DNA of 64,000 nucleotides from assembly GCA_965235115.1 (NCBI GenBank), contig OZ249439.1, positions 23,684,001-23,748,000 on the forward strand, read 5' to 3'. Under the pieces are notes generated by a model that did not search any database, had not been told where the DNA came from, and saw only the letters and a program-made list of their open reading frames with translations. The position numbers and the translations under genes are program-made. This document shows, one piece after another, positions 15,318-58,192 of the stretch; within the stretch, counting starts at the first letter, position 1, and every line of letters starts with the position of its first letter. Source of the stretch: Laetmonice hystrix. Taxonomy: Eukaryota.

Positions 15318-16232
15318 ATGGAGATGAACTACGGCGCCACGACCAATAACAACACCAAGGATGGGGGGTCGACGGGCGAGTCGGGTGACACCCCCGGGCC
15401 CCGAGACCGACGTCAAACGACGGGTAGAGACCGTCCGCTGACTGAGGCCGGCTCCACCACCTCGGAGACCACTACTCCGGCCTCGACGGCAGACTCAGAT
15501 TATGAGAAAACCAGGAATCGCCTAGATACCCTCTGCGTGGTCGGATACTGTATCGGCCTGCTCACTTTTGTCAGTTTTTATCACATCAAAGGATTTCGGA
15601 GGTTTCCGTACCCGGCCATAGGAAACCTGCAAGATATTAACCCTAACATGGTTGTTCTCAACCTGTGGGAGGATGGTGCGATTTTAGTGCTTGTCACGTG
15701 GGGCGTCAGGTACATACGAAAGATGGGGATGATTCTCCTTGACCAGTGGTTCTTCAGGGCTCACCTGAGCGAGACGGCAGACAGCGGGGGGTTGTCCGGG
15801 AGGTTGGGCCGATCGCCGCCCTTTGAGAACACCCCGGGTACGGGGTCGGTAACATTCACCTGGTGGTACATTGTTCCGATCATCCTCTACCACGGCGGGT
15901 TCGGCGTGTGGATGGGACTGGCCACTAACTACAACCTACACTACCAGATATCAGACATTGAGTGGGTTATCGTAGGGCTGGTGGTGTTCGTGCTAGGTGA
16001 GTTGATGGTCGTGGGTCGGACAGTGTGGGCAGCGAGGCAGGCCAGGCACTCGACCGACCCCGTGTTTGTCGGCAGTGCCATCATACCCGTCGTCGAGATC
16101 GCTGAAGTTATATCCTGCGTTGGCTACGCATTCCTGACTTTGACTTTACCAGCGTGCATCATGGCCTTCGTCAGGTTTATAATCGCAATCTTAGCCGCAG
16201 TGGCAAAGAAAGTTCACGGAACTGCTTTTTGA
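15318..16232 (+). CDS. Intronless multi-pass membrane protein, divergent steroid 5-alpha-reductase/TECR-like (3-oxo-5-alpha-steroid 4-dehydrogenase family)
   Basis: 304 aa from the Kozak ATG gcatcATGG; several hydrophobic helices; family-like motifs TWGVRYIRK, LYHGGFGVWMG, VGLVVFVLGEL, EVISCVGYAFLT; S/T/G/D-rich disordered N-terminus. Confidence 0.75.
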   Translation: MEMNYGATTNNNTKDGGSTGESGDTPGPRDRRQTTGRDRPLTEAGSTTSETTTPASTADSDYEKTRNRLDTLCVVGYCIGLLTFVSFYHIKGFRRFPYPAIGNLQDINPNMVVLNLWEDGAILVLVTWGVRYIRKMGMILLDQWFFRAHLSETADSGGLSGRLGRSPPFENTPGTGSVTFTWWYIVPIILYHGGFGVWMGLATNYNLHYQISDIEWVIVGLVVFVLGELMVVGRTVWAARQARHSTDPVFVGSAIIPVVEIAEVISCVGYAFLTLTLPACIMAFVRFIIAILAAVAKKVHGTAF

Positions 16233-17028
16233 GAAAAAAAAGAGAGAAGTACTTCACAAACTATCAATCATGCACGCACGCATGTTTCATGTGTAGCCTA
16301 AATTCCAATGGAACTATGAATACACCTATAGTTTCGTATAGGTAAAACATTATCATTTCATCCTTATCATCCCGCCTTCAATAGGGGCCTACATTAGATA
16401 TAATGCATATTTTGATATCCTTTTTATGATATTTTTATTGACACCGAACTTTGCAGTAACTTTGGAAGCTTTTTGAAATATTCGTTATCTTACTGAGACC
16501 GTTATTTTATGTGATGCAGTGTTTATATAGAGGCCTACGTATTTGATCAAGGTGTAGTCGTTAGAATAGGCGTATCCTGAATGCATGACCATAGTATAGG
16601 CCTAGGCCCTATACGGTGGCCAAACGCTAAATCGTCCGCTAACATCCACCCCTAAATTGGTCATATATACATTTATAGGCCTCTGATATATTATAGACCT
16701 ATGTCTGTGGTGCATTGTACGTATTTCTAAGTAAAATAAAAACACGAAGTAAGGGAGCGTATTCATTCGTAGCCTCATAGGCCTATCAACTCCCACCGTC
16801 ACGTTTTGTTTTCTGGACAACCGTACACATAGCATAACGCGACAGAAATGCATTTACTTTCTCCATAACTCATAACAGATAGCACCGGGAATACACTTTG
16901 TGAATGTGATGGGGTGCACGACCAATCCACGCTGCCATGCCTATCGGACCGGAGCCTTCATATGCCCCTATTCCACACAGACCACGAATTTCACGAATCC
17001 CTACGAATTGATGAATTCTCGGATTCGG

Positions 17029-17316
17029 CAGATATCAGACATTGAGTGGGTTATCGTAGGGCTGGTGGTGTTCGTGCTAGGTGAGTTGATGGTCGTGAGT
17101 CGGACGGTGTGGGCAGCGAGGCAGGCCAGGCACTCGACCGATCCCGTGTTTGTCGGCAGTGCCATCATGCCCGTCGTCGAGATCGCTGAAGTTATATCCT
17201 GCGTTGGCTACGCATTCCTGACTTTGACTTTACCAGCGTGCATCATGGCCTTCGTCAGGTTTATAATCGCAATCTTAGCCGCAGTGGCAAAGAAAGTTCA
17301 CGGAACTGCTTTTTGA
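17029..17316 (+). pseudogene. Partial copy 1 (C-terminal ~95 aa) of the reductase-like gene
   Basis: Near-identical to the end of the 15318-16232 CDS from QISDIEW onward; joined to 66 bp of foreign sequence. Confidence 0.85.
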
Positions 17317-18455
17317 GAAAAAGAGAGAGAAGTACTTCACAAACTATCAATCATGCACGCATGCATGTTTCATGGGTAAATTCCAATGGAACTAGGCCTA
17401 TATGATACACCTATGTCTCGTTGATATAGGTAAAACATTATCATTTCATCCTTATCATCCCGCCTTCAATAGGGGCCTACATTAGATACAGGCCTAATGC
17501 ATATTTTGATATCCTTTTTATGATGTTTTTATTGACACTGAACTTTGCAGTAACTTTGGAAGCTTTTTGAAATATTCGTTATCTTACTGAGACCGTTATT
17601 TTATGTGATGCAGTGTTTAGGCCTACCCTATAGGCCTAGAGGCCTACGTATTTGATCAAGGTGTATAGTCGTTAGAGTAGGCGTAGGCCCTATCCTGAAT
17701 GCATGACCATAGTAGGCCTAGATCGATAGGCCTAGGCCGTATATATACGGTGGCCAAACGCTAAATCGTCCGATAACATCCACCCCTAAATTGGTCATAC
17801 ATTTATAGGCCTCTGATATATTGTAGACCTATGTCTGTGGTGCATTGTACGTATTTCTAAGTAAAATAAAAAAAACGAAGTAAGGGAGCGTATTCATTCG
17901 TAGGCCTATCAACTCCCACCTTCACGTTTTGTTTTCTGGACAACCGTACACATAGCATAACGCGACAGAATTGCATTTACTTTCTCCATATTTCATAACA
18001 GATAGCATCAGGAACACCCTTTGTGAATGTGATGTGGTGCACGACCAATACACGCTGCCATGCCCATCGGACTGGAGCCTTCTTAGACGCATAAGAAACA
18101 ATCAAAGATATAGGCCTAGATTAAAACATCTTATGTAGATTTTATTAAAACAAGTTGGATATGATTGGTAACATATGCTAGTCTTCCAGTACAAATAATT
18201 AGGTTAGTTGTAGATTTGACATTCTGTTGGTGAAAAAAAAGTTTCACGAGGTCGAATTTGTGAACTGGGATAAATTTCACAGATAACCCATATTCTCCGG
18301 ACCTCTTACTTTTAGATTGGAAAGGACTGTTATTATATTGGATATAAGTTACAATACCTCCTACATGGTGTTTCTTGTCTGCTCTAAACGTGCAACCTTT
18401 GCCCACGATAGGCAGCGCCATCTCGTGAGGAACATGCAAATTAACGTGGTAGCCT

Positions 18456-19027
18456 TGGGGATGATTCTCCTTGACCAGTGGTTCTTCAGGGCTCACCTGA
18501 GCGAGACGGCAGACAGCGGGGGGTTGTCCGGGAGGTTGGGCCCATCGCCGCCCTTTGAGAACACCCCGGGTACGGGGTCGGTCAAATTTACCTGGTGGTA
18601 CACTGTTCCGATCATCCTCTACCACGGCGGGTTCGGCGTGTGGATGGGACTGGCTACTAACTACAACCTACACTACCAGATATCAGACATTGAGTGGGTT
18701 ATCGTAGGGCTGGTGGTGTTCGTGCTAGGTGAGTTGATGGTCGTGGGCCGGACAGTGTGGGCAACGAGGCAGGCCAGGCACTCGACCGACCCCGTGTTTG
18801 TCGGCAGTGCCATCATACCCGTCGTCGAGATCGCTGAAGTTATATCCTGCGTTGGCTACGCATTCCTGACTTTGACTTTACCAGCGTGCATCATGGCCTT
18901 CGTCAGGTTTATAATCGCAATCTTAGCCGCAGTGGCAAAGAAAGTTCACGGAACTGCTTTTCGAGAAAAAAAGAGAGAAGTACTTCACAAACTATCAATC
19001 ATGCACGCACGCATGTTTCATGTGTAG
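18456..19027 (+). pseudogene. Partial/chimeric copy 2 of the reductase-like gene (stop lost, TGA->CGA)
   Basis: Homology starts at tggggATGATTCTC; frame open; CGA at 18962-18964 extends the ORF to 19027. Confidence 0.85.
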
Positions 19028-20064
19028 CCTAAATTCCAATGGAACTATGAATACACCTATAGTTTCGTATAGGTAAAACATTATCATTTCATCCTTATCA
19101 TCCCGCCTTCAATAGGGGCCTACATTAGATATAATGCATATTTTGATATCCTTTTTATGATATTTTTATTGACACCGAACTTTGCAGTAACTTTGGAAGC
19201 TTTTTGAAATATTCGTTATCTTACTGAGACCATTATTTTATGTGATGCAGTGTTTATATAGAGGCCTACGTATTTGATCAAGGTGTAGTCGTTAGAATAG
19301 GCGTATCCTGAATGCATGACCATAGTATAGGCCTAGGCCCTATACGGTGGCCAAACGCTAAATCGTCCGCTAACATCCACCCCTAAATTGGTCATATATA
19401 CATTTATAGGCCTCTGATATATTATAGACCTATGTCTGTGGTGCATTGTACGTATTTCTAAGTAAAATAAAAACACGAAGTAAGGGAGCGTATTCATTCG
19501 TAGCCTCATAGGCCTATCAACTCCCACCTTCACGTTTTGTTTTCTGGACAACCGTACACATAGCATAACGCGACAGAAATGCATTTACTTTCTCCATAAC
19601 TCATAACAGATAGCACCGGGAATACACTTTGTGAATGTGATGGGGTGCACGACCAATCCACGCTGCCATGCCCATCGGACCGGAGCCTTCATAGACGCAT
19701 AAGAAACAATCAAAGATATAGGCCTAGATTAAAACATCTTCTGTAGATTTTATTAAAACAATTTGGATATGATTGGTAACATATGCTAGTCTTCCAGTAC
19801 AAATAATTAGGTTAGTTGTAGATTTGACATTCTGTTGGTGAAAAAAAAGTTTCACGAGGTCGAATTTGTGAACTGGGATAAATTTGACAGATAACCCATA
19901 TTCTCCGGACCTCTTACTTTAAGTTTGGAAAGGAATGTTTATTATATTGGATATAAGTTACAATACCTCCTACATGGTGTTTCTTGTCTGCTCTAAACGT
20001 GCAACCTTTGGCCACGATAGGCAGCGCCATCTCGTGAGGAACATGCAAATTAACGTGGTAGCCT

Positions 20065-20573
20065 TGGGGATGATTCTCCTTGACCAGTGGTTCTTCAGGG
20101 CTCACCTGAGCGAGACGGCAGACAGCGGGGGGTTGTCCGGGAGGTTGGGCCGATCGCCGCCCTTTGAGAACACCCCGGGTACGGGGTCGGTCAAATTTAC
20201 CTGGTGGTACATTGTTCCGATCATCCTCTACCACGGCGGGTTCGGCGTGTGGATGGGACTGGCCACTAACTACAACCTACACTACCAGATATCAGACATT
20301 GAGTGGGTTATCGTAGGGCTGGTGGTGTTCGTGCTAGGTGAGTTGATGGTCGTGGGTCGGACGGTGTGGGCAGCGAGGCAGGCCAGGCACTCGACCGATC
20401 CCGTGTTTGTAGGCAGTGCCATCATGCCCGTCGTCGAGATCGCTGAAGTTATATCCTGCGTTGGCTACGCATTCCTGACTTTGACTTTACCAGCGTGCAT
20501 CATGGCCTTCGTCAGGTTTATAATCGCAATCTTAGCCGCAGTGGCAAAGAAAGTTCACGGAACTGCTTTTTGA
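20065..20573 (+). pseudogene. Partial/chimeric copy 3 of the reductase-like gene
   Basis: Same junction (gtagccttggggatg); open frame fused to an upstream repeat-derived N-terminus (track ORF 19935-20573). Confidence 0.85.
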
Positions 20574-21699
20574 GAAAAAAAAAGAGAGAAGTAATTCACA
20601 AACTATCAATCATGCACGCACGCATGTTTCATATGTAGCCTAAATTCCAATGGAACTATGAATAGGCTACACCTATAGTTTCGTATAGGTAAAACATTAT
20701 CATTTCATCCTTATCATCCCGCCTTCAATAGGGGCCTACATTAGATAGGCTATAGGCCTAGGCCTAATGCATATTTTGATATCCTTTTTATGATATTTTT
20801 TATTGACACTGAACTTTGCAGTAACTTATGAAGCTTTTTGAAATATTCGTTATCTTACTGAGACCGTTATTTTATGTGATGCAGTGTTTATATAGAGGCC
20901 TACGTATTTGATCAAGGTGTAGTCGTTAGAGTAGGCCTATAGGCGTATCCTGAATGCATGACCATAGTAGCTATAGGCCTATACGGTGGCCAAACGCTAA
21001 ATCGTCCGCTAACATCCACCCCTAAATTGGTCATATATACATTTATAGGCCTCTGATATATTATAGACCTATGTCTGTGGTGCATTGTACGTATTTCTAA
21101 GTAAAATAAAAACACGAAGTAAGGGAGCGTATTCTTCGTAGCCTCATAGGCCTATCAACTCCCACCTTCACGTTTTGTTTTCTGGACAACCGTACACATA
21201 GCATAACGCGACAGAATTGCATTTACTTTCTCCATAACTCATAACAGATAGCATCAGGAACACCCTTTGTGAATGTGATGTGGTGCACGACCAATCCACG
21301 CTGCCATGCCCATCGGACTGGAGCCTTCTTAGACGCATAAGAAACAATCAAAGATATAGGCCTAGATTAAAACATCTTATGTAGATTTTATTAAAACAAG
21401 TTGGATATGATTGGTAACATATGCTAGTCTTCCAGGACAAATAATTAGGTTAGTTGTAGATTTGACATTCTGTTGGTGAAAAAAAGTTTTACGAGGTCGA
21501 ATTTGTGAACTGGGATAAATTTCACAGATAACCCATATTCTCCGGACCTCTTTCTTTAAGATTGGAAAGGAATGTTTATTATATTGGATATAAGTTACAA
21601 TACCTCCTACATGATGTTTCTTGTCTGCTCTAAACGTGCAACCTTTGCCCACGATAGGCAGCGCCATCTCGTGAGGAACGCAAATTAACGTGGTGGCCT

Positions 21700-22214
21700 T
21701 GGGGATGATTCTCCTTGACCAGTGGTTCTTCAGGGCTCACCTGAGCGAGACGGCAGACAGCGGGGGGTTGTCTGGGAGGTTGGGCCGATCGCCGCCCTTT
21801 GAGAACACCCCGGGTACGGGGTCGGTCAAATTTACCTGGTGGTACATTGTTCCGATCATCCTCTACCACGGCGGGTTCGGCGTGTGGATAGGACTGGCTA
21901 CTAACTACAACCTACACTACCAGATATCAGACATTGAGTGGGTTATCGTAGGGCTGGTGGTGTTCGTGCTAGGTGAGTTGATGGTCGTGGGTCGGACGGT
22001 GTGGGCAGCGAGGCAGGCCAGGCACTCGACCGATCCCGTGTTTGTAGGCAGTGCCATCATGCCCGTCGTCGAGATCGCTGAAGTTATATCCTGCGTTGGC
22101 TACGCATTCCTGACTTTGACTTTACCAGCGTGCATCATGGCCTTCGTCAGGTTTATAGGCCTAATCGCAATCTTAGCCGCAGTGGCAAAGAAAGTTCACA
22201 GAACTGATTTTTGA
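21700..22214 (+). pseudogene. Partial/chimeric copy 4 of the reductase-like gene
   Basis: Same junction; in-frame 6-nt GGCCTA insertion at ~22158; a 2-bp deletion upstream uncouples the repeat-derived start. Confidence 0.85.
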
Positions 22215-23349
22215 GAAAAAAAGAGAGAAGTATTTCACAAACTATCAATCATGCACGCATGTTTCATGTGTAGCCTAAATTCCAATGGAACTATGAATAT
22301 ACCTATAGTTTCGTATAGGTAAAACATTATCATTTCATCCTTATCATCCCGCCTTTAATAGGGGCCTACATTAGATAGGCCTATAGGCCTAGGCCTAATG
22401 CATATTTTGATATCCTTTTTATGATAGATTCTATTTTTATTGACACTGAACTTTGCATATAGGCCTAACTTTGGAAGCTTTTTGAAATATTCGTTATCTT
22501 ACTGAGACCGTTATTTTATGTGATGCAGTGTTTATATAGAGGCCTACGTATTTGATCAAGGTGTAGTCGTTAGAGTAGGCCTATAGGCGTATCCTGAATG
22601 CATGACCATAGTAGGCCTATAGGCCTAGGTATACGGTGGCCAAACGCTACATCGTCCGCTAACATCCACCCCTAAATTGGTATACATTTATAGGCCTCTG
22701 ATATATTATAGACCTATGTCTGTGGTGCATTGTACGTATTTCTCAGTAAAATAAAAAATGAAGTAAGGGAGCTTATTCATTCGTAGCCTCATAGGCCTAT
22801 CAACTCCCACCTTCACGTGTTGTTTTCTGGACAACCGTACACATAGCATAACGCGACAGAAATACATTTACTTTCTCCATATCTCATAACAGATAGCACC
22901 GGGAATACACTTTGTGAATGTGATGGGGTGCACGACCAATCCACGCTGCCATGCCCATCGGACTGGAGCCTTCTTAGACACATGAGAAACAATCAAAGAT
23001 TATATAGATTAAAACGGGCTATAGATTTTATTAAAACAAGTTGGATATGATTGGTAACATGCTAGTCTTCCAGGACAAATAATTAGGTTAGTTGTAGGTT
23101 TGGCATTCTGTTGGTGAAAAAAGTTCTACGAGGTCGAATTTGTGAACTGGGATAAATTTCAAGATAACCCATATTCTCCGGACCCCCGACTTTAATATTG
23201 GAAAGGAATATTTATTATATTGGATATAGGCCTAAGTTACAATACCTCCTACAATGGCTACATGGTGTTTCTTGTCTGCTCTAAACGTGCAACCTTTGCC
23301 CACGATAGGCAGCGCCATCTCGTGAGAAACATGCAAATTAACGTGGTAA

Positions 23350-26300
23350 CCTTGGCCCCGTTTCACGAAGTCGGCGACATCGCCGGCCCATATGAGGGAA
23401 AATGTCGCCCGCCCCATGCTTTAATTAACGTTGCAAGCTGGAGAAAAAAAGTTGGTGAAAAAAAATTCACGAGGTCGAATTATTGTGAACTGGGGAAGTG
23501 TTCAAAACATTGATAACCCATATTCTCCGGACCTCTTGTATTAAAAATGGGAAGGAAAATTTATATATTGGATGTAAGTTACAATACCTCCGACATGGTG
23601 TTTCTTCTGTGCTCTAAACATGCAAACTTCGCCCACTGTCGGCAGTGCCATCTCGTGAGAAACGTGCACATTAACGTGGTTGCCAGTCGACTCCGTCAGG
23701 GGGCTGAGCGTAGTGGGATGAATATCCACTGTCTTAATAATACCACATGCCTACTTAATAGTACATGTATTACCATCGGCTCCTTATTCAAACAAAAACG
23801 ATTTGGGCAAACCCTCCCACCCCAACCACCACCAAGCGGCTGGACGGAGAACCACCTGTTGGTTGATTACGATTGTGATGCGGTGCACGATCAATCCAGT
23901 TGGCCCCTAACCCTGCCCTATGGGACTGGAGCCTTTTGAGGCACATGGGAATCAATCCAAGATTTAGAATAAAAATAATTCTTCCATAAATTTGATTTAG
24001 ACAAGTTGCATATGATTGGGAAATGCTAGTCTTCCAGAACAAATATTTAGGTAAGTTGTGGATTCGACATTCTGTTGTCTAAATTGGTCATATTACACTT
24101 ATACCTCTGATATAATTATAGACCTATGTCCGTGGTGCATTGTACGTATTTCTAAGTAAAATATAAAAAAAAACGAAGTAAGGGAGCGTATTCATTCGTA
24201 GGCATATATCAACTCCCACCTTCACGTTTTGTTTTCTGGACAACCATACACATAGCATAACGCGAGAGAAATTGCATTTACTTTCTCTATCATAATAAAT
24301 AGCATTGGGAACACCCTTCGACCGGAAAACATCAAAATCGGGATAATATGCATGCATAGATATATTTCTAATTATTTCTTGATATCACTAAATCATTGTT
24401 GATGTCCTTAAATATTTAATTATATCAACAAATAATTAGAGATAGAGGTCTATCAGAAAATGACTTGGAGATATCACTAAATGAATTAATGATATCAAAA
24501 ATAGAAGTGGAATTAGGCCTAATGATATCTGCAATTTAAAGCAGTTACTCCAGGTGGCGGACTAGATAAAATAAGCAGAAAAGCAGTGCAACAACACTTT
24601 TGGAACTGTCTTGATGGTGCAGGGATTTTATATTATTTTTGTTAATTGTTACAGGTCATTATGCCCCCTATCGGCTTAACTCTGCATGATTTGCATTCAG
24701 ACTGTGGAGTTCAGGTGTGGAGTTGACCCTGGACAGTAAATCTTTCTTTCTGGCCGAGCTAAATTTGCTCGGCCAGAGTGCTCACCCGGGTCAACATGGG
24801 CTAAGCGCGTTCTCATACAGCTCAGCACCACTGATCCGGGGATTACCTGGGGAAATCCTCAGTGTGAACCTGCCCTAAGGGGAGGTTCTCACTGAGGATT
24901 CCCAAACTGCCATCTAGCGGGACATTATAGGATCCCTGTGACTGTCGACCGATCTCTTATTCGTGTTTAGCGTCTCGAAGCAGGATTAATTTAAAAGCCG
25001 TCTCGAAAGTAGTGTTAATGGGGGAAATGGCTAGACTTCTAGGCCTATCCTATACTGCTAGACCTATAGGCCTATCCGAGACGAGATCTAGGCCATAGAT
25101 AGTCTCGTTCATACCTACAACGTTAGGCCTATATGATTAATTTTTATTAGCATGTTTTTTATAATGCGATGCGGTGTGGATAGAAGTTTAGATACACCTA
25201 AGGCCTAGTCCTACAGTCAATCCAAGACGCAGGCCTACCCTTCTTAGACACATCAATCATGATTGGTATCATGCTAGTCTTCCAGGACATTTGGTTAGTT
25301 TTAGATCTGACATGCTGTTGGTGAAAAAAATAATTTTGCGAGGTCGAATGCTGAACTGGGATATTTTACAGTTTTTTTGTTTTGTTTTTCAGTGATAACC
25401 CAAATTCTCCGGACCTCTTGTAGTTAGAACGGGAAGGAATATTTATATATTGGATGTAAGTTACAATACCTCCGACTTGGTGTTTCTTGTCTGCTCTAAA
25501 CGTGCACTTTGGCCACGATACTCAATGCCATCTCGTGAGAAACATGCAAATTAACATGGTAGCCCTGTGCACTGCACCTGTACTAATAAGCCTAGTATTA
25601 GTGTATTGCCAGTCGACTCCGTCAGGGGGCTGAACGTAGTGGACTGAATATCTACTTTAAAATCTGAGGTTTTCATCATTTTTTAAGTTTTAAGGGCATG
25701 TTTGGTGCCTGATTTTCGGCTTATATGTGGACACCAGAAAATTTTCGACGAACGACCCCAAATTTTGCCCAGAGATGCCTGAAAACACCGAGAACCTAAT
25801 GTGCTAGATCCGGAACTTAGATTTAGTAAGCTATAGCCTAGCTACATGGTCGCTAGATGTCTCCCCCTTCATAGCCTACTCTGCATCCATTTAGGCTTCT
25901 GGAAGCGTGTTGACGCATGCACAGTAATTAAGCTGGAGATTGCACATAAGACACATAGGAAACAATCAAAGATAGGCCTATAGATTAAAACATCTTCTGT
26001 AGATTTTATTAAAACAAGATGCTATGATTGGTAACATGCTAGTCTTCCAGGACAAATAATTAGGTTAGTTGTAGGTTTGATATGTTGGTGGAAAAAAAAC
26101 ATTCATGAGGTCGAATTTCTGAATTGGGATATTGTTCATTGATAACCCATATTCTCCGGACCTCTTACATTACAGACGGAAGGAAAATTTATATATTGGA
26201 TATAAGTTACAATACCTCCGACATGGTGTTTCTTGTCTGCTCTAAACGTGCAACCTTTGGTCACGGTAGGCAGCGCCATCTCGTGAGAAACATGCAAAGT

Positions 26301-42945: not shown

Positions 42946-45900
42946 GGCTCCGAGGGAGCGAGCATGGACTGTCTCAATTAATGGGCTGGTAGGCGTAGGT
43001 TTCTGAAATTTCGGGCAGACTTCCTGAATAGTAGGCTGATAGGGATAAAGTCCAGTTTACTCATAAGATAACAAATGATTATCCAATCGCTAACCTGCTT
43101 AGTAGCACACTTAATCAGTTTCTGAAAGATATGGCAAGAGTTCTCTATGACTCAATGAGGTCGCAAGGATTTCACATGATTTTTTATGTAACGGATCCAG
43201 GGAGGAAGGTTATGTTTATTTGTGTTTTTCAAAGTTTTAATTCAAATCTTTACCCCCATTGTTGCTGTTTTGCTCAATTGAGTACTTGGTTATGGTACAT
43301 TGTGTATTTTTTGTGGGAATTTATTATGTATGTATGGTTAGCTATACAATAATGTCATAATTATGTCTAACAGGTGCGTAGAATAAAAAAAATAGGGCTA
43401 TGAATAAAAGGGACTGAACTGTTTTATTTATGTTTAAGTTCATCTCAAAATGTCTATTTCGTTAACTATGAGTTGTTGGGGGGTCAAAAGTTTGAATTGA
43501 TTCCAGACCCAGTAGGATAAGGTTGTGAATAAGAACCTTCAATTCACCGGAGGTTTGGGGTGTTTTTAATAGGGCCTAGAGGTATTTACAAGCTTTCACA
43601 ACAGATGGCGGCACCGTCAGCAGGTCCTTACCACATAAGTTGTAAACCTGTTGTTATCATTTCTTAATAACTCGGACTCGCGACTTGACATTGAGCTAAC
43701 CGTAAAAGTAATGCCAGGTCTGTCATTATATCAAGCCCTTGCCAGGTTTCTCGACAGAAGCACGAGGTTGCCTCTTTTCTTGCTCACTTAATCTTCTGAT
43801 CGCTAGGACTTTGGAAAATGGTTGATCCCGCCCGAACTGATTTAGCCTATAATGTTCTATTCTAACTTTGTTGAGTGAGGTAGTGCCAATTGAACCATAG
43901 ACCACCCATTTAATTACTCACTCATACAATATAGTTATTTCGGGAACTATTTGTAATTAAGAGCATCGGGTATACACAGTAGTTCGGATGTTGCCCAGCA
44001 GGCCATAATGTGACATTGTGCAACTTTTGACGGTAAACGCTTCCCAACAGGAGGCGCTACCAGTCTAATCGAGGTAGGCCTATTCCCTCCATTCTAAAGC
44101 ATGCATTCTAATTGTATTGTCAGTGTGCAATTGCCTGGTAGGAATATTGCATGTGGATATGTTATAATGTATATAGGTTTAAGGCTGATAATTATGGGTG
44201 CGAAGTTTTGTCTATAGGCCTAGGTCCCTTAATAGTTTAGTGAAGTGTCAATTTATTTGGCTAATATTTGTGTGTCAGAATCCCCTAACTAGGCTTGGTT
44301 TAGGATGTAGGCCTACATATGGCATAGGCCCCATTTTGACACTTCATTGGATAATGATCTATAGTGTCAAGGTATTTCTTCATGTAGGCCTAGGCCTATA
44401 GGCGGTTTAGGAGGCTTCTAATTAGTACATCGGCCATAGGCTGCCCTCAAAGTTCCCTGGTGTGTGTCACGCGTGCATTGAACGCAGAACTCCACGCGTC
44501 CATGATAAGTTTAGCAGACAAACTGAATGCAGACATTGATACTGAATGACGTCTGGTTTATATTAGGTCTACAGTGCCAATACTTCAGTCGTAACCCGGT
44601 GACGAGTGGTCTGTGTTCGGGGGCGGTAGCACGGGTAATACGAGAACGGTTTCACCCAGACAATTTAACACAACTTTACGTCTTTCCGCCGCCATCTCGA
44701 CTTCCGCTTGTGGTACGCACCCCTGCCAACGTCAACCGAGAGAAGGATGTCTGTTAGTTGTGGTCGTTCGCCTGGAAGATGACTGTCAGTATCCATCAGG
44801 TAAATGGTACTTGAAACGGGACAGGGTCGTGGTCAGGTGCAAGGGAGGGGTCTTTCCAATTAATTAGAAACATGTGCATTGCAAAACTTCGTCTTTTATC
44901 TTGTCACGTGTCATGATTATAAATGAGTATTTCCTACTTGGTCTACAATCTAAGATCTCTTGAGTCCATGGTTATAAAAACACCGCTGAGGCTGTATACA
45001 GATCTGCTCGTTTTCAAGACCGAACCCGGGACCTTACTGAAATAAGTCTAGGCAGTGGGTGATCAACAGACATTGTTCCATGCCTGGAGTAGAACCTAGA
45101 TCTATGATACAGAGTTGTTCCGTGCTCCTCCGGTTGTTAGCGACACGCGCTCTCTCTGGCGGAGAATACCTGACGCAGACCAGCGACACCTATATGGCGA
45201 TCACACGACCATCGGCCTAAATTAGTAGCTGTGAGACCAATCTGCCACATGGCCATGTGGAAAATGGTCAGCCAGCTAGGACAAACCGGAACCACATTAT
45301 GAATAAAGTAAGTGAAACCTTTTGCAATATATGTTTTGAAATCGAAACACAGGTAGGCTATCTTGACAATGTTTGCTGAATCCATGCTTTCTCCGCAAGA
45401 GGCCGCTTCAAGGAAGATATCGTAAGTGGTGCCATCTGTAGTCGAAAATAGTTGTTGACAAACGTGTTGAGTCAACAGAGGCACACACAGGGCGCGGGCG
45501 TCAAGCGGCACGCAGGCGTCAAGTGGCACGCGGGCATCCGAACGCGGCTTTTATATCACATGACTCTAAACGGAAACGAGCGACACACTTTTCTACGTTT
45601 TTGTAACAGTTTTTTTTCCAACTGCAACTAAGCAACACAAATCAATGTGCCAACCCCGATACATCAATAATTATATATTGACAATTGCTTAATATTAATT
45701 TCTCTTGCATTCTACCTTGCCTTAATCCTTTACATGCTTCCACTACTCTTTACTTATGGTTAATTATATGGAAACACTTCCAAAATACTTATAACAAAAT
45801 GTTCCGTCCCTGAGGTGATGATTTTAATATTATTGGGGCTGTGGTGGTCACATGGCACACAAAGAAATTGAAACACATGTGGCTCAAAAACCTGCTGTGT

Positions 45901-46900: not shown

Positions 46901-48706
46901 AATCGTTAAATATCGGGTATTTACTTGGGCCAGTCATCGCCCCCGTTATAATCGTTATATATTAGGCCACTTAAAATTAATAAATTGTTTTACATGACTC
47001 CAACTTCTGAAATGTTGGTGAGTAGGGCATTTTATATTTTATATTTTTCCTCGACAAGAAGAAGGACAGCATAGATCACCAATACTGGAAAAATACTTTT
47101 AATTTCTCAATATCTCAACATTTTGTACAGCCCTTCTATACCTTGAGGGTCACTTTAACTGTAACACCCTGACAGAACTGTGGGAGACTAGGTTTAACAA
47201 GAAATTTTAAAGCTAGAATACTGAACATTAAAAAAGCCAACAATTGAAGTTTCAAAAGATATGCACATAGAGTCCTCAATACCAAATATGTACCCACTGA
47301 AGGAATTGAAGGATAGAAGGATACACCACCGATAGATGGCGCGCGGCGTGCGCTTGCACTGACGATCTCTAACGGTTTTGGGGATGAAAAAAACGGACTT
47401 TTTGAAAGTTATAAAATATTAAAAAAATCGAGGCGGCGCCAAAAAATTGAGGCGGCCGGCCATGTAAAACAATTTATTAATTTTAAGTGGCCTTATATCG
47501 GGTATTTACTTGGGCCAGTCATCGCCCCCGTTATAATCGTTATATATCGGGTATTTACTTGGGCCAGTCATCGCTCCCGTTATAATCGTTATATATTATA
47601 TCGGGTATTTACTTGGGCCAGTCATCGCCCCCGTTATAATCGTTATATATCGGGTATTTACTTGGGCCAGTCGTCGCTCCCGTTATAATCGTTATATATC
47701 GGGTATTTACTTGGGCCAGTCATCGCCCCCGTTATAATCGTTATATATCGGGTATTTACTTGGGCCAGTCATCGCCCCCGTTATAATCGTTAAATATCGG
47801 GTATTTACTTGGGCCAATCATCGCCCCCGTTATAATCGTTATGTATCGGGTATTTACTTGTGCCAGTCATCGCCCCCGTTATAATCGTTATATATCGGGT
47901 ATTTACTTGGGCCAGTCATCGCCCCCGTTATAATCGTTATATATCGGGTATTTACTTGGGCCAGTCATCGCCCCCGTTATAATCGTTAAATATCGGGTAT
48001 TTACTTGGGCCAATCATCGCCCCCGTTATAATCGTTATATATCGGGTATTTACTTGGGCCAGTCATCGCCCCCGTTATAATCGTTATATATCGGGTATTT
48101 ACTTGGGCCAATCATCGCCCCCGTTATAATCGTTATATATCGGGTATTTACTTGAGCCAGTCATCGCCCCCGTTATAATCGTTATATATCGGGTATTTAC
48201 TTGGGCCAGTCATCGCCCCGTTATAATCGTTATATATCGGGTATTTACTTGGGCCAGTCATCGCCCCCGTTATAATCGTTATATATCGGGTATTTACTTG
48301 GGCCAGTCATCGCCCCGTTATAATCGTTATATATCGGGTATTTACTTGGGCCAGTCATCGCCCCGTTATAATCGTTATATATCGGGTATTTACTTGGGCC
48401 AGTCATCGCCCCCGTTATAATCGTTATATATCGGGTATTTACTTGAGCCAGTCATCGCCCCGTTATAATCGTTATATATCGGGTATTTACTTGAGCCAGT
48501 CATCGCCCCGTTATAATCGTTATATATCGGGTATTTACTTGGGCCAGTCATCGCCCCGTTATAATCGTTATATATCGGGTATTTACTTGGGCCATCATCG
48601 CCCCCGTTATAATCGTTATATATCGGGTATTTACTTGGGCCAGTCATCGCCCCCGTTATAATCGTTATATATCTGGTATTTACTTGAGCCAGTCATCGCC
48701 CCCGTT
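46901..48706. repeat. 48/49-bp minisatellite (~26 copies), interrupted by a MITE after the first unit
   Basis: tatatcgggtatttacttgggccagtcatcgcccccgttataatcgtta. Confidence 0.96.
46965..47492. mobile_element. PIF/Harbinger-type MITE (528 bp)
   Basis: Perfect 32-bp TIR ggccacttaaaattaataaattgttttacatg with TTA on both sides; the empty-site variant gttatatattatatcggg is present in the array at ~47588. Confidence 0.9.
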
Positions 48707-55444: not shown

Positions 55445-55655
55445 AGGCTGGATTCCACTTAACCGATTTACATCCGATTGGCCATCCGATTGACGATAAA
55501 ATGTATCTGATATTTGCGGCCAACGAAAAATATACATCTGATCTTTACAAAGTAAATGTCCTTTAATGATTTGATGACACAAATTACAATAATTTCAGAA
55601 GTTAAGAAAATCGGATGGCCGATCGGATGTAAATCGGCTTTGTGGAATTCAGCCT
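55445..55655. mobile_element. PIF/Harbinger-type MITE (211 bp)
   Basis: ~47-bp imperfect TIR aggctg(g/a)attccac...ccgatttacatccgat(t/c)ggccatccgatt; TTA on both sides. Confidence 0.85.
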
Positions 55656-58000: not shown

Positions 58001-58192
58001 GGCAAGACTTAATTAATATTTTGGTTTACGCGCATTTTTGGACAGAGAACAAGGTCGGTAGGGAGGAAAAAAGGGAAATTGACTTTTTCTAATCAACGTC
58101 TTATTTACATTGATAATCTAAGGTCAGTAGGTGGTAAAAATAATATGTATGAATGGGAAGAGCGTAAGCTGAACTATTAAAAAAGTCTGGCC
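58001..58192. mobile_element. PIF/Harbinger-type MITE (192 bp, diverged)
   Basis: GGCAAGACTTAATTAATATTTTGGTTTACGC vs reverse complement of the right end GGCCAGACTTTTTTAATAGTTCAGCTTACGC; TTA on both sides. Confidence 0.72.

Follow-up and report, generated by a model that had tools for sequence, protein, structure and literature searches.

The general chemistry of the scars left by Tc1/mariner transposons has been described (PMC6943129), and the pogo-family element Passer leaves scars of 0 to 4 bp (PMC9976928). Here we analyze a stretch of 64,000 nucleotides from the annelid Laetmonice hystrix (contig OZ249439.1, positions 23,684,001 to 23,748,000; hereafter the window, with positions counted from its first base), in which the eight-base word TAGGCCTA occurs 46 times versus ~0.9 expected from base composition. 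In this word GGCC stands between two copies of the dinucleotide TA. We consider it probable that TAGGCCTA is the excision scar of TA-inserting transposons of the Tc1/mariner superfamily that have GG...CC ends, a reading that is well supported, not proven. The process is of a known kind, while its scale, uniformity, and local rate are unusual.

The history of these insertions can be followed in five tandem units of ~1.6 kb at positions 16167-23760, whose pairwise divergence is 0.9 to 6.0% (self-BLAST and MAFFT). The units were used as one another's reference for ancestral and derived states.

16167-17250, plus strand: unit a, which carries a deletion
17251-18898, plus strand: unit b
18899-20507, plus strand: unit c
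20508-22142, plus strand: unit d
22143-23760, plus strand: unit e

Short indels are the main difference among the aligned units, and they take one form, the conversion of TA to TA+GGCC+TA, with TA+GGC+TA or TA+GGCCC+TA as rarer forms. The sites discussed below are as follows.

17393-17400: TAGGCCTA plus an extra TA, in unit b only
17618-17638: scar pair with TACCCTA in between, in unit b only
17684-17692: TAGGCCCTA, a 7-bp variant with a 2+3 filler, in unit b only
17713-17740: scar nest in unit b
20663-20669: TAGGCTA, a 5-bp variant, in unit d only
20746-20766: triple scar stack in unit d, its first scar lacking one C
20932-20939 (unit d) and 22576-22583 (unit e): TAGGCCTA, absent in units a, b, and c
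22156-22163: TAGGCCTA in unit e only, in frame within an open reading frame
22376-22397: the same triple stack as at 20746-20766, intact, in unit e
22460-22467: TAGGCCTA in unit e only
23227-23234: TAGGCCTA in unit e only, with seven paralogous sites empty

The paralogous sites were empty in four of four cases for the insertion at 22156, in three of three for 20663, and in four of four for 22460. For 23227, all seven paralogues were empty, namely, three sister units and four diverged outgroup copies. These empty sites indicate that the events are insertions and not deletions. At least 15 independent events fall in the ~800 bp that are common to all five units. Each unit has 79 TA sites in this stretch, for which the tree length is 0.098 substitutions per site, and the rate of scar gain per TA is thus about twice the rate of substitution per base. 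The nests homologous to that at 17713-17740 (at 16597, 19328, 20974, and 22612-22627) are different in each unit. At a TATATA spot (18111, 19719, and 21357, compared with a diverged paralogue at 25973), GGCC lies between different neighboring TA pairs, which points to independent hits at one hot spot. The insertion at 22156 preserves the reading frame of a 174-amino-acid open frame, to which it contributes Gly-Leu; an exact-protein look-up of the open frame of the array gave no match. An earlier note on this DNA, made from its letters alone, had read such changes as insertions of TA-GGC(C)-TA type that arose repeatedly and independently, citing sites at 22156, 23227, 17393, 22460, and 20663 and the stack at 20746-20766. 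All six were found where it had placed them, and both the polarity and the recurrent origin were confirmed. The array is a hot spot and probably records successive local hops of a transposon now gone from the reference.

The excess of TAGGCCTA is not confined to the window. In 18 random 10-kb samples, it occurred 56 times versus 2.5 to 4.6 expected from Markov models (12- to 22-fold), so that the enrichment over a Markov background implied by the earlier note was borne out. The genome of 627 Mb holds 168,757 copies, 49-fold more than the 3,469 copies of the reversed word, which contains CpG, making the Markov expectation the fairer baseline. GGCC ranks first among the 256 TA-NNNN-TA words, with 82 distinct contexts versus 3.9 expected, and scars take up ~1% of the TA dinucleotides of the genome. 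Relatives of TAGGCCTA that have decayed by one mismatch number 161 versus 82 expected, indicating that scars of many ages are present. Stacked scars, of which there are 3,141 genome-wide, make up about 2 to 4% of scars, a few times above random re-hitting. A satellite of ~865 bp (G000:C1:19565-90405 and L013) carries one TAGGCCTA per unit, and part of the genome-wide count therefore consists of amplified single events. At L003:3520-3970, TAGGCC belongs to a microsatellite-like array of TAGGCCGGTCGG units and is a simple repeat, not a scar. Searches of full-text literature for the scar words did not turn up any description of such a phenomenon.

The composition of the filler is narrowly defined. 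Counts of TA-G(n)-C(m)-TA words were 102 for (2,2), 22 for (1,2), 19 for (2,1), 8 for (2,3), 2 for (3,2), and 0 for (3,3), with control cells holding 4 to 7. TA-GG-TA was not enriched and TA-GGC-TA was enriched just 1.7-fold, from which it follows that both two-base stubs are kept almost always. Fillers of 5 nucleotides were GGGCC or GGCCC in 15 cases versus 2 that had a central A or T; TAGGGCCCTA occurred 1,201 times versus 175 for a control word, and TAGGCCGGCCTA was near background (48 versus 20 for its control). The 5-nucleotide fillers and the 3+3 word point to G or C as the third base.

The sequence context of the scars is that of Tc1/mariner footprints, with a duplicated TA on either side of a short filler that derives from a single ancestral TA and an AT-rich palindromic preference around that TA. 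Position -1 of the scar flanks is A or G in 73% of cases versus a background of 54%, and position -2 is T in 46% versus 33%, with the mirrored pattern on the opposite side. The next most enriched palindromic fillers were CATG (26 versus 6.3 expected) and GATC (16 versus 3.0), and these weaker classes, TACATGTA and TAGATCTA, have the same T-R-TA-Y-A target context as TAGGCCTA. The CA/TG of the CATG class match the ends of a 249-bp TA-duplicating miniature inverted-repeat transposable element (MITE) whose sequence begins CAGTG and of which the genome contains 369 ends. Unlike TACATGTA, the 3-nucleotide scar TACAGTA was not enriched; together with the presence of the CAGTG MITE, this fits a rule of two plus two retained bases in this species. 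TAGATCTA acts as a third scar class, with sites in the window at 45097, 55056, and 60532, and no GA...TC-ended TA element was identified for it. One MITE copy (L021:1298) has TAGATCTAGATCTA where its sister copies have a single unit.

The window and the random samples, 244 kb in total, were scanned and yielded a sole TA-flanked inverted-repeat element with GG..CC ends, at L004:480-1651. Its family has a terminal inverted repeat of 24 nucleotides that starts GGGTC, and its terminal GG and CC are the bases of the scar filler. All eight fetched copies are flanked by a TA duplication and nothing longer. The genome contains 29 exact ends of this family, and one candidate end had 29 genome matches at 81 to 100% identity, eight of them at 99 to 100%. 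Such near-identical copies suggest that the family is young and was recently mobile. Its loci include G000:C6:6600788-6601957 and C7:8695586-8697093, and nonautonomous copies of ~1.2 kb are among them. A search of the window found no copy of the family and none of the GGGTTAGTG-type repeat described below. One longer copy is coding.

L019:1221-7172: coding copy of ~6 kb (5.95 kb), with an intron-split transposase gene on the minus strand

The colinear exons of this copy match, in turn, HTH_psq, HTH_Tnp_Tc5, two consecutive parts of DDE_1, and a PHD finger. The exons were searched singly and unjoined, with HTH_psq scoring above the cut-off and HTH_Tnp_Tc5 and the two DDE_1 pieces below it. When the last catalytic exon was used as the HMMER query across the library, 768 relatives were returned. 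Ten long relatives were tested; all of them contained DDE_1 (E values of 1e-13 to 1e-30) and seven contained HTH_psq, which identifies the candidate as a pogo-type member of the Tc1/mariner superfamily. The TA duplication, the terminal inverted repeats, and the combination of CENP-B-type HTH domains with DDE_1 are those of pogo/Tigger elements. Known elements of that group typically begin CAG. The apparent PHD finger lies at the end of the transposase gene (L019:1970-2194, minus strand) and is a weak match (E value of 4e-4, 20.7 bits versus a Pfam cut-off of 24). A PHD finger is unusual in a transposase. A PDB sequence search with the HTH exon gave nothing useful. Two further leads were discarded: the sequence at L016:2225, which weakly matches the second candidate word, is not an element, and GGGTACCC, considered as a 4+4 scar of the candidate element, lacks TA flanks and is part of local repeats.

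The link between the candidate family and the scars is statistical and indirect, and it is seen in the adjacency of ends and the density of scars in flanks. Of the 29 candidate ends, five have TAGGCCTA immediately before them and one has TAGATCTA. By comparison, there is no abutting TAGGCCTA at any of the 369 ends in the TA-inserting CAGTG control family (Fisher P = 1.5e-6), and the difference holds (P = 2e-5) if two sites on G000:C30 that lie ~114 kb apart are counted as one duplicated event. The 580-bp flanks of eight candidate copies contained 15 scars versus 2.5 to 3.1 expected, an excess of about five- to sixfold; when equal windows were resampled from the random samples, 15 scars were reached in ~0.1% of trials (P ~ 0.001). 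Furthermore, four of the six occurrences of TAGGGCCTA, the three-G variant, in all of the DNA analyzed were in candidate flanks. The candidate copies differ among themselves by private insertions of TAGGCCTA and GATCTA, and these insertions within element copies point to an ongoing process.

The mechanism that we propose is as follows. Insertion of the element would duplicate its target TA, a duplication that is itself observed. On excision, the transposase would cut the nontransferred strand two bases inside each end, leaving a 3' overhang of GG after the TA of each flank. Joining of the ends with both overhangs retained would then yield TA-GG-CC-TA, a net gain of 6 bp. Most scars would have been made by the pogo-type family or by nonautonomous kin with the same termini. 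The earlier note had suggested footprints of a TA-targeting DNA transposon with GGC...GCC ends. The footprint part of this idea agreed with every indirect test that was run (the TA duplication, the filler drawn from termini, the target context, the CATG and GATC classes, and a GG-ended resident family), while the termini of the candidate are GGG...CCC and the dominant scar retains two bases of each end.

Several observations weigh against excision by this family as the source of the scars. No locus was seen in its filled, scar, and empty states, and about 15 to 30 candidate copies stand against ~170,000 scars, with no copy of the family in the window itself. Under cut-and-paste transposition, neutral scars accrue with excision and copies do not, and we infer that an imbalance of this kind is to be expected. 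The genome-wide frequency of scar stacking, ~2 to 4%, is lower than the 17% adjacency at candidate ends, and there is thus no simple correspondence between the two biases; regional hot spots are proposed as an explanation. In addition, a second, more abundant repeat that starts GGGTTAGTG also adjoins scars. It may be a putative nonautonomous partner of the candidate that has the same GGGT start. Among the first 100 places at which GG and a non-C base come after a scar (G000:C1:669282-10693257), 16 continue with the word GGGTTAGTG(T/A)TAGTTT immediately after TAGGCCTA. Three starts of the GGGTTAGTG word lie inside ~70 bp at C1:7768960-7769031.

The earlier note had pointed to MITEs in the window as elements with suitable ends. 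Those at 46965-47492 (GGCC...GGCC ends) and 55445-55655 (AGGC...GCCT ends) are real, and no partner repeat was found for a third at 58001. These MITEs are Harbinger-like and, as the note itself had cautioned, have a TTA duplication, while the footprints duplicate TA only. The 3-bp TTA/TAA duplication of PIF/Harbinger elements is absent from the scars, which arise also at other sites (for example, CTAT), and the window MITEs are therefore not the source. Immediately after the MITE at 46965 comes a 49-bp satellite of ~25 units (47494-48706).

The presence of GGCC-ended MITEs bears on an alternative in which the scars come from an element with GGCC...GGCC ends that is cut four bases in, such that palindromic overhangs anneal and are ligated without a polymerase. 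The extreme dominance of exact GGCC, and hence the uniformity of the scars, would be better explained in this way than by a 2+2 join. The MITEs that would provide such ends duplicate TTA, however, and TTAGGCCTTA is at background (0 to 1 occurrences in 180 kb). An element of the form TA|GGCC was not found in the 244 kb scanned, and the elements that coexist with the CATG class have CAGTG ends, not CATG ends. The low count of TAGGCCGGCCTA (48 versus 20) and the third base of G or C indicated by the 5-nucleotide fillers and the 3+3 word also tell against cutting at four bases, and we regard this origin as unlikely.

Less likely still is a micro-insertion that is independent of transposons, for instance, one in which a telomerase-like or repair polymerase extends TA-ended breaks by a short templated run of G and the ends are then joined. 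That no element was caught leaving is consistent with such a process, as is the fact that TAGG is the prefix of the telomere unit TTAGGG and that the telomere-like word GGGTTAGTG... often follows scars. Addition of this kind predicts a peak at three G. The peak was at two, which is the reason that telomerase-type addition was rejected. Neither the CATG and GATC classes nor the Tc1/mariner-type target context is explained by it, nor is the clustering of scars around one transposon family and not another. Finally, an assembly or polishing artefact, or the precise deletion of an ancestral motif, judged on the internal evidence of the assembly, is very improbable given the biological target context of the 168,757 copies, events common to subsets of units in line with the unit tree, the excess of decayed one-mismatch copies (161 versus 82), and up to seven empty paralogous sites against one filled.

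If the scars do record excision by TA-inserting transposons, then each site visited by one transposon family bears a mark that can be recognized and dated. The result would be a genome-wide log of cut-and-paste activity that copy counts do not reveal (~30 copies versus ~170,000 scars). As a mutational process, it adds exactly two codons on landing in coding DNA. A consequence for annotation is that ordinary slippage would not account for much of the small-indel divergence seen between the paralogues and between the haplotypes of this species. The same reading points to a pogo-type transposase with a very high rate of excision and a clean, uniform scar, which may be of interest to builders of transposon tools, and a concrete, testable candidate source for the scars now exists. 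As a tentative extension, a still-active pogo-type element and its GGG-ended nonautonomous kin could be a leading source of indels in this annelid, accounting for ~170,000 six-base insertions that locally match, in their frequency per TA, the point substitutions per base and that include in-frame gains of two codons in coding sequence. The element would return preferentially to the TA of its own scars, every visit thereby preparing a further landing site.

Compared with known systems, the scars are closest to Tc1/mariner footprints such as those of Sleeping Beauty (TACAGTA/TACTGTA) and Tc1/Tc3, with which they share the TA duplication, a filler of terminal bases, an AT-rich palindromic target, and, under the proposed mechanism, end joining (PMC6943129). 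They differ in that both 2-nucleotide stubs are kept almost always, giving one dominant 8-bp palindrome, in having accumulated to ~170,000, and in a rate of gain per TA that in this array is of the order of the substitution rate per base. The candidate resembles pogo/Tigger elements, for example, Passer (PMC9976928), in its TA duplication, short terminal inverted repeats, and combination of HTH_psq, HTH_Tnp_Tc5, and DDE_1, and it differs in its termini, which begin GGG, and in its intron-split gene with a PHD finger at the end. PIF/Harbinger (Tourist-like) MITEs have GGCC-type termini, as does the window MITE at 46965-47492, but make a 3-bp TTA duplication, whereas the scars duplicate TA only. 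A genome-wide survey of DNA-transposon excision in rice is reported likewise to have detected scars by comparing related sequences (PMC4423477); in L. hystrix, by contrast, no other TA-flanked 8-mer of the genome is as enriched as a single scar word.

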